This document shows, piece after piece, positions 2,180-19,489 of a stretch of 38,629 nt of DNA (positions are counted from its first letter, which is position 1; each line of letters opens with the position of its first letter). The notes beneath the pieces were generated by a model, which saw only the letters and a list, made by a program, of their open reading frames with translations, was not told the DNA's origin and did not search any database. Both the position numbers and the translations under genes were made by a program. This DNA is from Salpingoeca rosetta (lineage: Eukaryota > Protista > Choanoflagellata). The stretch covers positions 1,110,820 through 1,149,448 of the forward strand of contig JAWQFM010000022.1 in NCBI GenBank assembly GCA_033442325.1, written 5' to 3'.

Positions 2180-4091
2180 TTACTTCCTGTGGTGTGGTGT
2201 GATGTGGGTGCACAGACGTCTGAGTTGGAAAACATGTGCATGCGAGTACGATGATGACCAAACAAGCAAAGGCGAGCAAAGGCGAGCAAAGGCGAGCAAA
2301 CACCACTGACCTGTGGCTGCGGTTCCTATCTTGCTGGCGGTAGTGCTGTTGCTGGTGCTGCTGTGGGGCGTATGGTGGCTGGCCTGGGATGAGCGGGGGT
2401 TTCGATGCTGCTGGCGATGACGAGGGCGGCATTGCGTACTGGGCAGGCATTGGCCACCCCATCATGCCCGGCGCCATCATCGGCGGTGCCACGTGCATGC
2501 CGTGCGGGCTGGACGGCTGCTGGATGGGCGACGCGGGCTGCATCGGGTGGTACCCGGCGTGCATCGGGTGCGGTGGCGGCGAGTGGTGCTGGGGCGGTGA
2601 GGACGGCACGGGGGCTCCCATCATCGGCGGCGGCACACCTTGCATCATCGACCACACCCCGTTCCCATCCTGGTGATGCAAGGCGCAGGCAGCCACACAC
2701 ATGCACACACACACATGCACACAAGATTAGGACATGGGCACAAAGTAAACTGATGCAAAGCCGCCAGCACAACAGTGTCAAACCAACAGTGTCAACTCAA
2801 CCTCCCCTCTATCTGTATCAGCGCCATTAAAAACGACGACCACCACCGACCTGAGGCATCTGCATTGGCTGCTGGCCCATCATCCACGGCTGCTGCGGCT
2901 GATGTTGCTGTTGATGTTGTGGCTGGTGGTGTTGGTGTTGGTGTTGGTGCTGGGGCGCGGTGAACTGCTGTGGCGGTTGATGCACCCCATAGGTCGGCGC
3001 CACTTGGGGCGAGGACATGTTACCACCACCACCGCCACCACCACCATACGCATACGTCTGTTGTGGCGGCAGTGGCGACTGCTGCTGTTGCTGCTGGTGC
3101 TGCGGCGGCATGTATGGCATTGGCTGCTGGTGCTGGTGCTGGTGCGAATAGAAGCGTTGCTGCCCCCGTTGGTGGTGCTGGTGGTGTGGCTGGTGGTGCT
3201 GGTGCTGTTGCAGTCTGGTCATGTGCATGGCGGTCATGTGCGTCTGCATCATCGCCGCGTACATCTGCTGCTGCGCCATGCGCTGCTGGGGTGTGAGGTC
3301 CCGATCATCCATACCGCCACCACCACTGCTGCTGCTGCCACCGCGGTGCCGGCCACCGACGGGCTGGTGTCGATGTCGCCCTCGCCGCACTCTGCCGTCT
3401 CCGCCCCCCGACGAAGATGCTGACAGCGACGGTGGCACAGGTGCAGGCGCGCTCCCCACCTCCAACTGCTGTTGGTGTTGCTGTTGATGGTGTTGGTGGT
3501 GGGTAGTGGGTGCGGCATTTGGTGCTGGTGCAGGGGCGTCGATGATGTCGTCATTCTCGTCGTCATCATCGCCGTCGCGGAAGATGCGCGCACGTGCACG
3601 CTGGTACTCGTCCTCCTTCTCGCTCAGCGTCCTGGCAGCCATGCACAGACACAGCACAGAGGCAGGCAGTGCAGGTTGGAGTCATGTGAGCGCCGTCTTG
3701 GTGGGTTAGCACATGTGTGTATGTGTGCATGTGTGCATGTGTGTATGTGTGTATGTGTGTATGTGTGCGCGTGTGTGTGTATGCGCGTGTGTGCAATACG
3801 GCGGCAAACCATAAAAGAGCGTGTGGTGCCTACCGTTGGCGTCCTGTTGCGCCATCATCGCTCCCTTCCGCTGCCGCGTCATCCTCCTTCTCACCAGCGC
3901 CATTCGGTCCATCTCCCGCCACCTTGGCTCCGTCCTTTGCGTCCCCGTTGCCGGCTGCCCGCTGCGCCCGTGCCGCGCGCGTGTGTTTGCGGCCCTTTGC
4001 GTTTGCCGGCCGCTTCATCAGCACAAACGATCCCTCCGCAGCCTGCAAGGGAGGGGTGTGTGCGATGGCATGAGACAGAGCGGGGAAGTAA

Positions 4092-4148
<57 letters not shown>

Positions 4149-6665
4149 TGTGTGTGTGTGTGTGTGTGTCTGTGAGTGAGTGAGTGTGTGCGTGTGTGCG
4201 TGAAGTTCAGGACGATTCAATTCAACGCTTGGATCACAATGGGACATGCAGACCAGCAGGAGGACATGTGCTGACCTCGTTTGTTTCGTCTTGTTCGGCC
4301 AGCAGCTCGTCGATTCGGGGCGACCAGACAGACACGCCACTGAGGCCAAGACAAGCGCGCGAGAAGGCGTTCGTGGTGGCGGGGCGTGTGAAAGGCGGCA
4401 GTGCTTGACAACAACGAGGACAAGGATAACAAGAATAACAAACAGCAGTGGAGAGTCGAGTATGTGCGGTGAACGTGCTTACGCGACTTTTGTGTAGACC
4501 ACGCGTTGGCCGCCCATATCCACCGAGTGGTCGAGGCCAAACAGATCCGCCATCTGCACCACATGGAGCATCAAGGGGGGGGGGGCGGTGTCAGAGGGAG
4601 TGTTTGTCTTGTGGCACGAGAGCGTGCGCAGCAACCATGGACATGCACATAAAGATACAGACAGACACACACACACGCGCACAGACACACACACACGCAC
4701 GCACAGACACACACACACACGCACGCACAGACACACACACATACACGCGCGCGCGCGCACACACACACACACAGGCACATGAACACGGCCCACCTTGTGG
4801 CAAATCATGCGGTGATACGACGACATTTCTCCGAGCACGAGCTGTACGCCGTCAAGGTGGCGTGCAAGGGCACGTGAGCGATGCGTTGGGGTGGCGAGTT
4901 GTGTGTTTGTGTATGCAAACGCATGTATGTGTGCATGTGTGCGATTGCATATTTGCGTGTGTGGCAGTGTAACAAGGAAAGAGCATGGCTGCTTGTGAGG
5001 AGATCAGTTAGAGCTAATAGAAATCGCTCACGGAAGCGAACACCATTGTGCCGCATCACGATAAACGTGGTAATGTATAACTCTCATCACATCTCCGTCA
5101 CCAGCCACAATATTGCCAAAGGCAGCAAAGAGAGATGGGACAGCATGGAAAACGAATAAAAGCGCAAAGGAAGAGAACGACTGTGCAAGAAAGAACATGG
5201 AGGATCAGTTAGAGCTAATAATGATCGCTCACGGAAGCGAACAACAGTGTGCCGCATCACGATAAACGTGGTAATATATAACTCTCATCACATCCTCGGC
5301 AAAGACAATGAAAAGAGACGAACGAGAGAGAGAGAGAGAAGGGAGCAAGAAACGCTATCAACGTACAACACTGACAATGCGCAAAGCGCTGTGCTATGGA
5401 GGATCAGTTAGAGCTAATAATGATCGCTCACGGAAGCGAACAACAGTGTGCCGCATCACGATAAACGTGGTAATGTATAACTCTCATCACATCCTCGGCA
5501 AAGACAATGAAAAGAGACGAACGAGAGAGAGAGAGAGAGAGAAGGGAGCAAGAAACGCTATCAACGAACGATACTAGCAGCGCGCAAAAGCGCTGTGCTA
5601 TGGAGGATCAGTTAGAGCTAATAATGATCGCTCACGGAAGCGAACACCATTGTGCCGCATCACGATAAACGTGGTAATGTATAACTCTCATCACATCCTC
5701 GGCAAAGACAATGAAAAGAGACGAACGAGAGAGAGAGAGAGAGAGAAGGGAGCAAGAAACGCTATCAACGAACGATACTAGCAGCGCGCAAAAGCGCTGT
5801 GCTATGGAGGATCAGTTAGAGCTAATAATGATCGCTCACGGAAGCGAACAACAGTGTGCCGCATCACGATAAACGTGGTAATATGTAACTCTCATCACAT
5901 CCTCAGCAAACGCATTGCTCTAAGGCAGGCAGGACTTGGGAAGGGAAGAGCAAAGCGCCGGTGTTGCTTGAGTGTGTGCGCGATACTTGAAACGTGGCAA
6001 AACAGGACAACCAGCGACAACGTATACCTGTCTGACGGGGGCGTGGATGAACTTGTGAAGCTTGTCGCGCACATCCATAATCATTTGGCGATCCCTGCGC
6101 ATGGTGTGTGGCGTTGCAAGATGCAAGTGGGACCAAGGTGTAGCAAGTTGGTGAGGGCAGTAGTACTATGAGAATGGAGCAAGGGAAGGTGCTTCACATG
6201 TGTGTGTGTGTATGCACACATGCATCGCGTACATGCGAGCATGCACAAGATACTTACTGAACGCGCTTGTTGAGCGCGGTTCTCACTGCCTCCTCTGCAT
6301 CACGAACGGCTGCCGCCCGGTCCTCGGCGCTGACTGTACACGTGGCATGTGCATTCGGCCATGCGTGCATGCGACAGGTAACAACGGATGGTGAGGACGA
6401 TGGCGAGCACGACGACGACAATAACGACCCGCACCACAAGGCAGCAACAATTGGACCACTGTTTACGCACGCACGCGCATGCACACATGTATGTGGACAT
6501 ACGTGTTGGTTGAGGGTCTGGGTTGGGAAGCAAGGGTGCCTTTGGCGCGAGCTGCTCCTCTTGTTGATGTTGCTGCTGCTGTGGTTGTTGTGGTTGTTGT
6601 GGTTGTTGTTGTTGTGGTTGTTGCTGTTGTAGTTGCTGCTGCTCGTCCTTGTCAGTGAGTGTCAT
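2180..6665 (-). CDS. R3H + SUZ domain RNA-binding protein (R3HDM/ARPP21/encore-like) with Q/P/H/M-rich C-terminus; snoRNA host gene
   Basis: Exons 6665-6503, 6333-6258, 6094-6028, 4841-4794, 4553-4483, 4339-4276, 4042-3834, 3631-2851, 2669-2311 and a tentative last exon 2186-2180; phases consistent. R3H: [16 protein letters not shown]...[20 protein letters not shown] (RxxxH). SUZ: [18 protein letters not shown]. The 3' end is uncertain (an unspliced form would stop at 2827). Confidence 0.85.
4999..5096 (-). ncRNA. SNORD44: Box C/D snoRNA, U44-like, copy 1 (most diverged; terminal stem GGAGAU/AUCUCC)
   Basis: Minus strand: terminal stem, box C GUGAUGA, element AUUACCACGUUUAUC, guide UAUUAGCUCUA then A and box D CUGA. 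The guide is complementary to conserved 18S UAGAGCUAAUA. The D+5 rule gives the A equivalent to human Am166, and human U44 has the same AUUAGCUCUAACUGA. Confidence 0.88.
5200..5297 (-). ncRNA. SNORD44: Box C/D snoRNA, U44-like, copy 2
   Basis: Stem GAGGAU/AUCCUC, box C GUGAUGA, box D CUGA, same two 18S-antisense elements. Confidence 0.88.
5399..5496 (-). ncRNA. SNORD44: Box C/D snoRNA, U44-like, copy 3
   Basis: Same stem, boxes and guides as copy 2. Confidence 0.88.
5603..5700 (-). ncRNA. SNORD44: Box C/D snoRNA, U44-like, copy 4
   Basis: Same stem, boxes and guides as copy 2; shares the internal CACCATT variant (plus strand) with copy 1. Confidence 0.88.
5807..5904 (-). ncRNA. SNORD44: Box C/D snoRNA, U44-like, copy 5
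   Basis: Same stem, boxes and guides as copy 2. Confidence 0.88.
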
Positions 6666-7453: not shown

Positions 7454-8080
7454 TTAGTCCTCGTCCCAGTTGGGGTTCTGCTTGGGGGGCTTGGGGCCAC
7501 CTGCCTTCTTCGCCATAATAATCTGTGTTTCAAGGAAAGAGAGAGAGAGAGAGGGGGGGGGGGGGAGGGAGTGGGTTTAGTGTCAACGAAACGAAGGAGT
7601 ACGACACGACACAGCACCAATTGAGACAGGGACAGGTAAAGCAAGCACAAACCGACACAAACACACAAACACACACACACCTGGTCCACGCGGAGGATGG
7701 TCTTGGCGGCGCGAGTGGCGTACTTGAGAGCCCAGACCTTGGCATGGAAGCTGTCATACACACCGGCCTCATTCATGTCTGCGACGGCCACGTCCTCGGA
7801 CAGGATGTCGTAACCGGCGTTCTTCTCGCCGTTCTCGTGCGCTGCATACAGGTTGGACACAACCTCCCGCGACTTGACACCGCAGTTCTCAGCAAGCGTC
7901 GCCGGAACAACCTCCAGCGCCTCTGCATACGACTTGATGGCATACTGCTCCAGGCCTGTACAAGGACGTGCAACAGCATAACGTGGAGTGGAACAGTGAG
8001 CGCAAAGCAGACCGACAGTGTGTGTGTGTGTATGCAGGGGAAAAGAGAGGATGGAATGCGGGTTGAAAGACCGCCGAGGG

Positions 8081-8167
<87 letters not shown>

Positions 8168-11100
8168 TGTGTGTGTGTGTGTGAGTGAGAGAAAAGGGTT
8201 GAGTGTAACTGCCGGCTTACACATGGGAGCGCACAGAAGCAAGGCGACCATGTCCGATTAAAAGGCAGACCCAACCAAATGGTTGATATCACTGTCAATG
8301 ATGTACATAAAACGAGCAACAGGGTGGGGTACCAAAAGCCCTGCTGCCCGTTCCCTTTGACAGTTTCAAGAACGAGAAGGGTGAAGGAGGAGGACGACGA
8401 ACAGGAGGCGGAGGAGGAGGAGAGGAGGAAGTTGTGGCAAGTCGAGCGAAAGTAGTGCGAAAAAGGAGGAGGAAGTGGTGGCAAGTCGAGCGAAAGTAGT
8501 GCGAAAGGAGAGGAGAACAAGACAAGGAATCGGAATCGGTGGAAGGAGACCATATGGGCAAAGCACGAAGGAACAAAAGCGAAAAAGACACTCGCCAAAC
8601 ACACAACATCATAGACACATACAGGCAAACGCACGCTACACACTGACCAGAGCATGTGTCGCCAAACTTGGTGATGAGACGAGCGAGCTCAATCTCGGTG
8701 GCACCGCCACCGGGGAGGAAGCGCTGCTCCTTGGTCAGCGACTTGTAGGCGTTGATACCGTCGTCCAACGCACGCTCAACATCATCCATCACGTTGCCTG
8801 AAGAGGTGGACAAGCACATTCACATTCACACGCACACACACACACGAATAAGCAGCCGTAGCAGCAGTAGCACCAAGTGTGAGCACAACACAAGAACGCA
8901 CACACAAGGCAAGGTATTCGAGAGTCAGCCGGGACGTGTTGGTGGAGGGGAACAGCAACCAGACACAAGGACAAGCCAAGGAAGGAGAAGAAGAAAGGGT
9001 GATATGGACTGTAGGACTGAAGCAAGCGAGGGAGCTGGAAACGGAGAGTCCAAAAACAAACAAACAAACAAACAAACAAACGGACAGGCGAGTGACGCAA
9101 CCACGAACCGCTCGAAACTTGATCCCACAACCACAACCATCACAACGAACAACCACATCAACGGGAAAATGAAGGGTTGTTCGCGGCAAGGTGGACAGCA
9201 GCAGGCACGTAACGGGAACGCAGGGGAGCGGGACAGGGCACGCACGCAAGAACCCAAGAATCACACAGTGTACAGCCATGACGGGTGAGCAGCACAGAGC
9301 AGGTGTATCAACAAACAGACAGACGGGCTATCAAACGAGAGGGGAGCGAGGCAAGGAGGAAGAAGCGTGGAAAGTGAAACAGAAGTGTCTCACGAAGAAA
9401 ACACGAACATAGAATCAACAAACGAGGGGATCGATCAAAGACCGTTGGTCACACGTTTGACCGCTTGGTCGCACATTTGTTAGGGTTGAAGTCTTACTTG
9501 TTGCGCCACGCACGATGATGGTGGAAACAGCGCTGTTGATATCGGCTTGCCTGAACACGGTCACAGTTGTGTCGCCAATCTGTAACAGAAAGGTACACAT
9601 GGGCGACATGTGGCGTGGTGAGTGAGGAAGAGGGGGAGGGAGAGATTGTGGTGCACGAAGTATGGTCGGGAACGGTGTATCGAGGAAGAGTGGTAGCGGG
9701 GGTTACAACGTCGAGAGAAAGCCACGTTCAGTTCAAAGAAGCACACAGGTTCTTATTCCCACCAAGCACCGCAGGAAGCACGCACCTCCTGCACGGAGAC
9801 GGAGTGGCAGTGGCCGAGCTCCTGCGAGCTGGGGCCGGTGAGGACGGGAAGCGCGGTGGCACCGGTTGCCCGGCACAGCCGCTTGAGGTCAAACTTGGAG
9901 TTGAGCTTGACAACGAGCAGCTCAAACCGGTTGCAGAAGTGCATGCCGAGGTCGCCAACCTTGCCCGTGGTCACAATCACAGACGCACCGCTGTCCTTGA
10001 TGGCCTTGATCTTCTTCTCGAGCACAGACTCCTCGTCCTTGCTGTACGACTTGAGCTCCTCGGCAGTGTTGAGAAGCACAGTGCCCTGCGAAACGGTATG
10101 CGAGGGTGCGAAAGGTAGCATGGTTGAGTTGGGGTTGAGTTGGGCGAGGAGGTGTTGGGGCAGTAGCAACGCAGATGCCCGTGCTTGAGAAGGGAGCACG
10201 CAGTAGCTCAACAACAGCAAGGTAAACAAACGATCAAACAAACAAAAAACAAATAGCGTCGAGGAACACGTCGTGCCGCACATAAGCACCCGAGCTAGGG
10301 GCTGTTGCTGTTGCTCTGCGTTGCTGTCAGGGCACTGGGAAAGGAGCATGGCGCACCTTTGTCTCGGTGTAAGCGTGGTCGAGATCGGCCGTGAACGCGG
10401 CGATGCGTGCGTCCTGTGCAGATGTGATGGAGCTGTGGATGTTGCGGGTGAACACCATGCCGCGAACCACGGAGCTGGAGAAAACGCCGCTGCCGGGGAT
10501 CTTGACAATGCGCACGTTGTCCACGTTGAAGGGTTTCCTCGACTCCTCCTTGGGCATGATGTCCACGCACGCCTGTAGTTACCAACACAATGGAATGAGG
10601 GGAATGAGTGGAAGGGGAAAGGGGGAAAGGGGCACGGTGTCGTGTTCTTGCGTGCATGCGTGCGTGTGTATGTGTGTTCGCGCGCCTCTTGTCTGCCTCC
10701 ACCACCTTCACACCCCTACTTCACGCGCCGCAAGGATCACATGAACACGTACGTCGGTGACGAGCTCTGACAGGAAGTCCTCGAGACCGTTCTGTTTGCT
10801 CATGATGACAGTCTTGATCGCCCGCTTCACTTGCTGTAGATCGGGGAAGGCACGAGGCAAGCAGGGTGCGTGCGTGTGTGTGTGTGTGTGTGTGTGTAAG
10901 TACGGATGGAGCTGGCAAAGGTCGGCAGGGTGAGGCGGTGGAAACAACCACCAACCACCAACACAATCAACGCACACATGCACAAACACAAACACATGCA
11001 CAAACACATACAGCAAGAGCGATCGCAAAGACATGTCGAGTGGAAAACGCACCGCCTTGTCGCGGAAGTCCTCGACTGTGTGGCATGCAAGCTCTGGCAG

Positions 11101-15236: not shown

Positions 15237-19489
<4,253 letters not shown>

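Follow-up and report, generated by a model that had tools for sequence, protein, structure and literature searches.

Introns that hold several small nucleolar RNA (snoRNA) genes are recorded for plants, Chlamydomonas reinhardtii and Ostreococcus tauri in PMC7671301, with reference to Chen et al. 2008 Genetics, and intronic clusters of H/ACA snoRNAs are recorded for Drosophila by Huang et al. 2004 J Mol Biol, as cited in PMC5932544. Such clusters place several sense snoRNA genes, often tandem-duplicate isoforms, in one intron, and cutting of the polycistronic precursor has been presumed or shown for them. Animal mono-intronic snoRNAs, by comparison, are released by debranching and exonuclease trimming, and human U44 (SNORD44) lies alone in an intron of GAS5. 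Here we describe a locus of the choanoflagellate Salpingoeca rosetta in which five copies of a U44-like box C/D snoRNA gene share one intron of a gene for an R3H-SUZ protein. It lies in a stretch of 38,629 nucleotides (nt), called the window below (GCA_033442325.1, contig JAWQFM010000022.1, positions 1,110,820 to 1,149,448); coordinates are those of the window unless stated otherwise.

The array resembles the plant, algal and fly clusters in its layout, and differs from them in being homogeneous, with one guide present five times, and in its choanoflagellate host; precursor cutting in S. rosetta would follow by analogy with those systems. With the animal mono-intronic snoRNAs it shares a protein-coding host transcribed by RNA polymerase II, sense orientation and intronic units. 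Unlike them, and unlike human U44, it has five units in one intron of a protein-coding gene, from which trimming alone could not free the inner copies. We consider it probable that the units are five functional isoform genes of the SNORD44 / Z102-R77 lineage, carried by the spliced host intron, released by a polycistronic route and guiding methylation of A191 of 18S ribosomal RNA (rRNA). An earlier note on this DNA had set animal snoRNAs sharply against polycistronic clusters elsewhere. The novelty was overstated and the contrast is less sharp than implied, since multi-snoRNA introns are established in plants, Chlamydomonas, Ostreococcus and, for H/ACA RNAs, Drosophila.

The units were first apparent as a tandem repeat of 204-bp period at 5197-5910 (Tandem Repeats Finder; 3.5 copies, 96% matches), and a fifth, more diverged unit at 4999-5096 lies outside this repeat call. 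All five are on the minus strand. Copy 5 (5807-5904) comes first in the transcript and starts 123 nt past the 5' splice site; it scored 131 bits with R1, a covariance model built from the units. It is followed by copy 4 (5603-5700; alignment and unit-built model), copy 3 (5399-5496; alignment and guide scan), copy 2 (5200-5297; alignment, BLAST and unit-built model) and copy 1 (4999-5096), the oldest and most diverged, which ends 157 nt ahead of the 3' splice site. In the alignment every copy is 98 nt long. Read 5' to 3', a unit consists of GAGGA, U, box C (GUGAUGA, unit nt 7-13), an 18-nt stretch ending in AUUACCACG (nt 23-31), UUUAUC, a C'-like GUGAUGC (nt 38-44), 33 nt containing a 5-bp internal hairpin (UCGCU/AGCGA, nt 58-62 with 69-73), the guide UAUUAGCUCUA (nt 78-88), A, box D (CUGA, nt 90-93) and UCCUC. 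In copy 3, taken as the representative unit, the positions derived from this order are 5484-5490 for box C, 5466-5474 for the 9-nt element, 5453-5459 for the C'-like box, 5409-5419 for the D guide and 5404-5407 for box D, again on the minus strand.

No variation among the five copies is seen in the boxes, the guide, the internal hairpin or the 9-nt element; box C and box D are identical in each. All five copies keep the pairing of the 5-bp terminal stem (nt 1-5 with 94-98), which is also closed in every unit fold, with z-scores of -2.3 to -2.9 against shuffled sequences. The sole candidate for a D' box is UUUA at nt 32-35. Variants that distinguish the copies lie at unit nt 2/3 with 96/97, 20/22, 51/54 and 75-77; C51/U54, U22 and C20 are specific to copies 2, 3 or 5, and the internal variant AAUGG (nt 50-54) is common to copies 4 and 1. 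The description of five tandem U44-like box C/D units, each with a stem, boxes and an 18S guide, is borne out element by element, and so is the claim that a single guide was amplified five-fold.

The target of this guide was sought in the genome's own ribosomal DNA (rDNA), which was located by a 15-mer pattern and its 18S confirmed with Rfam. Around the target the 18S sequence reads GGAUAGCCGUGGUAAUUCUAGAGCUAAUACGUGC. The guide forms 11 Watson-Crick base pairs with positions 188-198 of the small-subunit (SSU) rRNA, where about 0.05 such 11-mers would be expected by chance (98 x 2096 positions), and A191 faces the fifth nucleotide upstream of box D. The guide rule thus predicts the 18S segment UAGAGCUAAUA as the target and A191 as the site of 2'-O-methylation. 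SNORD44 is the recorded guide for human 18S-A166, which is equivalent to Arabidopsis A162. Its 3' guide plus box D are common to the S. rosetta units. The placing of A191 at the SNORD44 target position (human A166) is a prediction from this shared guide and from the literature.

In an Rfam scan no unit matched any family at its gathering score. All five units gave sub-threshold matches to snoZ102_R77 (RF00359, clan CL00060), with scores of 26.6-27.8 bits where the cut-off is 40 (27.0 bits for copy 5). The U44-type identity itself is upheld: in all five copies the guide plus box D can be aligned with the snoZ102_R77 consensus (UAUUAGCUCUA.CUGA), and the D guide pairs with the genome's own 18S so as to face the conserved adenosine in UAG-A-GCUAAUA. 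The likeness to SNORD44 and snoZ102_R77 lies in the box C/D architecture, in the aligned 3' guide plus box D (AUUAGCUCUA.CUGA) and in the predicted target, the adenosine that is A166 in human and A162 in Arabidopsis. The S. rosetta unit differs in its lower scores, in its length of 98 nt with a 5-bp internal hairpin, and in having only AUUACCACG(UUU) left of the D' guide to the large-subunit rRNA. We regard 'U44-like' as a fair description of how the RNA works, although formal Rfam membership is not reached.

The host intron was defined by spliced RNA-seq reads. It spans 4842-6027 on the minus strand (1,186 nt, GT..AG) and holds all five units. The splice joint 4841|6028 was crossed by five reads from two runs (one read in X21; four reads with four different starts in X23), and it appears as CT..AC on the plus strand, the intron beginning GTATAC and ending GTACAG on its own strand. 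The neighbouring joint, 6093/6094 to 6257/6258, was supported by 31 reads from three runs. In every aligned RNA read the first mate was on the plus strand, which, assuming the usual stranded library, means that the host RNA is the minus strand, the same as the units. The RNA depth of run X23 was limited to the bin 4794-4854. The exon upstream of the intron (6028-6094) encodes the start of the R3H domain, the one downstream (4794-4841) encodes 16 residues with an R-x-x-x-H motif in the reading frame, and the next (4483-4553, its AG and GT sites read from the sequence) encodes the end of the domain; all three are on the minus strand and join in frame. The spliced peptide matched Pfam R3H at 40.7 bits with the 4483-4553 junction, compared with 34.1 bits for a slightly different splice. 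Further along the same strand, an open frame at 2827-3657 carries a SUZ domain (PF12752, 28.5 bits against a cut-off of 25) and a Q/H-rich tail. A search for homologous proteins with this SUZ/Q-rich frame found none, the search having been swamped by low-complexity words.

The reads therefore show that the units are transcribed by RNA polymerase II within the R3H-SUZ pre-mRNA, in the sense orientation, inside a spliced intron. The earlier claims that a single intron of an R3H-SUZ gene contains all five units and that these are sense to the host both stood, the first by the joint that spans the units and the two Pfam domains, the second by the agreement of read strandedness with unit strand. 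Taking an intronic cluster to be at least two sense snoRNA genes in one spliced intron, the array is such a cluster. Many introns of the window, at 4657-4779, 1740-1900 and numerous other places, are taken up by long (CA)n/(TG)n and (GA)n microsatellites. Matches to mir-297 and mir-466 from Rfam in permissive mode were spurious and correspond to these microsatellites.

Comparison of the copies with each other and with their spacers suggests how the array arose. Between the unit of copy 1 and the other four, identity is 89-93%; for the spacers flanking copy 1 it falls to 44-55% with other spacers in global alignment, which is random-like and effectively unalignable. Copies 2-5 are 96-99% identical to one another and their spacers 84-100%. 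The spacers of the recent repeat, within 5298-5806 on the minus strand and interleaved with copies 3 and 4, are 5701-5806 and 5497-5602, which are 100% identical, and 5298-5398, which is 84% identical to both; each of the three contains a (CU)n tract. From these identities, copy 1 is an old duplicate, and copies 2-5 arose recently, when a 204-bp block of unit plus spacer was expanded in tandem. The contrast between the copy 1 unit and its flanks speaks for purifying selection acting on the unit, and the terminal stem adds to this picture: copy 1 has GGAGA...UCUCC where the other copies have GAGGA...UCCUC, with pair 2-97 changed from A-U to G-C and pair 3-96 from G-C to A-U. All 50 of the 50 stem cells are paired, and sliding the partners by 1-3 columns lowers pairing to 33-66%. 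The compensated stem reported for copy 1 is real, both pairs being altered on both sides. A GC-rich hairpin begins 3-4 nt past copies 5, 4 and 3, with none after copies 2 and 1; it was rejected as a general processing signal because it is present after those three copies only.

Copy number was examined in the genome assembly (55.4 Mb, 68 contigs). BLAST, an exact 12-mer search and the covariance model built from the units found only these five copies, the model having been applied to 150 of about 4,300 rough candidates. In run X1, which is probably DNA, depth was 56 for the contig that carries the unit type of copies 2-5, 32 for that of the duplicated spacer and 14-15.5 for the unique flanks. 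These ratios, about 4x for the unit type and about 2x for the spacer, match 4 + 1 units and two identical spacers, with the reservation that read depth is a weak measure of copy number. A position within the array, 5158, is A in the assembly and G in RNA run X21 (2/2 reads) and in X1. This is a strain difference and not RNA editing, because the G is present in the probable DNA run as well as in the RNA run.

The same genome offers a second layout for comparison. Two consecutive introns of NAT10 (contig C15) contain one box C/D candidate each, at 7930-8022 and 8535-8616 of locus L020 on the plus strand, with sub-threshold matches that are snoZ196-like (34 bits) and SNORD53-like (24 bits). Read from the sequence, they end roughly 130-150 nt from their 3' splice sites. 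One candidate in each of the two introns suggests that the animal-like one-per-intron layout is used as well, the five-in-one array being on this evidence an exception.

By the route we propose, the terminal stem of each unit would bring boxes C and D together, and the core proteins of small nucleolar ribonucleoprotein particles (Snu13, Nop56, Nop58 and fibrillarin) would assemble on each unit. Exonucleases working inward from the ends of the debranched intron could not free the inner copies. Since four spacers of ~100 nt separate the units, endonucleolytic cuts in the spacers would be needed, followed by trimming to the protected stems, as in the plant and algal polycistronic clusters. Each mature RNA of ~90-98 nt would then pair over 11 bp with 18S rRNA and direct 2'-O-methylation of A191. 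A hint of mature products came from the sharing of sequence words with further runs. In runs X6-X8, 0.21-0.25 of the words sampled from 4400-6400 are present, and for the words of one unit, that of copy 3, the share was 0.63-0.75 in X6 and X7 and 0.63-0.88 across X6, X7, X24, X4 and X5, X8 not being among the runs listed in this unit word search. The exons and units alone make up 0.074 + 0.173 of the 31-mers of 4400-6400, and the profile of word shares hints at mature mRNA plus mature snoRNA without the spacers.

Several observations weigh against five functional genes released in this way. The kinds of run behind the word-share hint are guesses only. The three RNA runs examined as raw reads show no pile-up on the units and no depth over units 2-5, and yielded only splice junctions and scattered intron reads; these libraries probably do not capture snoRNAs. 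An exon-by-exon search of this intron-rich genome found no RNase III domain, and a second RNase III model gave only a weak partial match of 18.7 bits. In the units themselves, the Rfam scores fall under the gathering cut-off, D' is degenerate (UUUA) and the interval from C' to D is unusually long (45 nt, with the hairpin); highly divergent C'/D' motifs that function are known (PMC3116282). Finally, copies 2-5 arose so recently that their conservation is no proof of the use of each one.

This last point opens the way to an alternative in which only one copy, or only the outermost copies, would be productive, and copies 2-5 would be a young neutral expansion, produced by unequal crossing-over at the (CU)n-containing spacers and degraded with the intron. 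Copy 1 would be the likeliest productive copy because its 157-nt distance from the 3' splice site is about that of the NAT10 candidates. Both the single candidate per NAT10 intron and the lack of a detected RNase III gene in the exon-by-exon search fit this account, and with two spacers fully identical no selection can be read from copies 2-5. It does not readily explain why boxes, stem and guide are intact in all five copies, or why the word shares of the inner copy 3 are so high in X4-X7 and X24, albeit with words that are largely common to the other copies; moreover, other eukaryotes do process multi-snoRNA introns. On balance we think it unlikely, though it deserves to be taken seriously.

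The two further alternatives fare worse. An array transcribed as an independent unit from its own intronic promoter, like the independent plant clusters, would account for the few host-strand reads of X21 within the intron (4855-5281), but pre-mRNA accounts for them equally well. The array has the orientation of its host and lies fully inside a spliced intron, only 123 nt are available upstream of copy 5, and no pile-up of read starts was seen anywhere, making such a promoter very improbable. The copy number might also be an artefact of assembly, with fewer or more true copies, or the units might be decaying repeats devoid of function. The short-read contigs of X1 break inside the array, so none spans it. 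Against this, the depth ratios of that run are as the assembly predicts, the assembly has only 68 contigs for 55 Mb, and invariant functional elements, a compensated stem and homologues in other eukaryotes are not what decaying repeats would leave; we give this explanation hardly any credence. Five functional genes on a polycistronic route thus remain the reading that we prefer.

A second complementarity to 18S rRNA lies in the 9-nt element. AUUACCACG pairs over 9 bp with SSU 177-185, and two bases separate this segment from the downstream duplex of the guide at SSU 188-198; the chance expectation for a 9-mer match so near the target is roughly 0.015. In the five units no usable D' box follows it, only UUUA. 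For this reason AUUACCACG is probably an accessory, 'extra' base-pairing element and not a second methylation guide. The latter role would need UUUA to serve as D' and would direct modification to G181, and it was rated the less likely of the two. 'Extra base-pairing' by box C/D snoRNAs is an established mechanism (van Nues et al. 2011, PMC3116282), and the present case resembles it in having a conserved snoRNA element complementary to rRNA beside the methylation site; it differs from that system in that the pairing in S. rosetta is predicted from sequence.

Homologues were sought in metagenomes. A pattern with the spacing specific to S. rosetta had no match. A looser one had 17, among which only three distinct ones are real homologues, L024, L027 and L039 (L028 has the same matched unit as L027); the remaining matches lack box C and a terminal stem and were rejected as snoRNA homologues. 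Rfam gave no match at E<=1 on the looser-pattern loci. The homologues share box C, CAUUACCACGUUU and AUUAGCUCUAUCUGA with the S. rosetta units and differ elsewhere. They are single-copy and carry two guides, one at D' for the large-subunit segment UAAUAGGGAACGUG and one at D for the 18S segment UAGAGCUAAUA. The former is CACGUUUCCUAUUAC; it has a good D' box (CUGA or AUGA) after it and is complementary to UAAUAGGGAACGUG, a conserved segment also found in S. rosetta. In these homologues, which are apparently fungal, the 9-nt element overlaps the large-subunit guide by 4 nt; the guide is absent in S. rosetta and, by eye, present also in the plant consensus. The comparison indicates that the S. 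rosetta RNA has lost its large-subunit guide and kept the part that pairs with 18S. The homologue in L027 lies on a contig of 497 kb and 56% GC, probably fungal, between two exon-like open frames that read, by eye, like eIF3k. A single copy in this setting suggests that the snoRNA family has switched host genes over time.

Targets in the S. rosetta large-subunit rRNA were also scanned for. In the rDNA copy that ends contig C4, the 3' part of this rRNA is missing (no sarcin-ricin, no UAAUAGGGAACGUG), and in the incomplete rRNA the scan gave matches of 9-10 nt at chance level, with ~2 and 0.6 expected. The 18S motif TAGAGCTAATACGTG occurs at 12 places in the genome. Seven lie no more than 25 kb from where a contig starts, on C4, C9, C23, C24, C32, C35 and C36; C3, C22, C25 and C30 have it elsewhere. 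This distribution suggests that rDNA units may be dispersed at chromosome ends. The 18S copy on C22 matches only positions 4-605 of the SSU model.

Elsewhere in the 38.6-kb window, a box C/D scan gave no convincing candidate besides the five units. Its only other hit, at 18793-18927 (plus strand), was judged unconvincing because it had several short 10-bp matches, most of them with G-U pairs. One CCT8 exon of the window encodes a peptide that agrees at every residue with the CCT-theta protein recorded at NCBI for S. rosetta, which marks the DNA as that species or a strain nearly identical to it. A CCT8 intron contains, at 8190-8375 on the minus strand, two long hairpins joined by a hinge with an ACA near the 3' end (-63.9 kcal/mol, z = -3.6). 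Rfam had no match there at E<=1, and the predicted fold fits an H/ACA-like RNA.

Full-text searches of a partial literature collection found no paper on choanoflagellate snoRNA genes or their organisation, and the five-in-one-intron layout appears to be undescribed in this group. The array is a known type of arrangement in a lineage of evolutionary interest and not a new mechanism; with such arrangements established in plants, green algae and, for H/ACA RNAs, flies, nothing here overturns current understanding. What it adds to a model choanoflagellate is an unannotated snoRNA locus that the curated thresholds of Rfam miss; no further source of this guide was found in the genome. The retention of the accessory element alongside loss of the adjacent large-subunit guide would make the S. 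rosetta RNA a small natural experiment on 'extra base-pairing'. The array is also a compact and genetically tractable test case, in an organism closely related to animals, for how one intron can release several snoRNAs, and its distinguishing variants mean that one small-RNA library could reveal which copies are used. That S. rosetta, which belongs to the sister group of animals, frees all five by plant-like endonucleolytic processing, alongside animal-like one-per-intron genes, is a tentative view that we place somewhat short of even. If it is true, the ancestor of animals would have had both routes, and the near-strict rule of one snoRNA per intron in animals would reflect a later loss.

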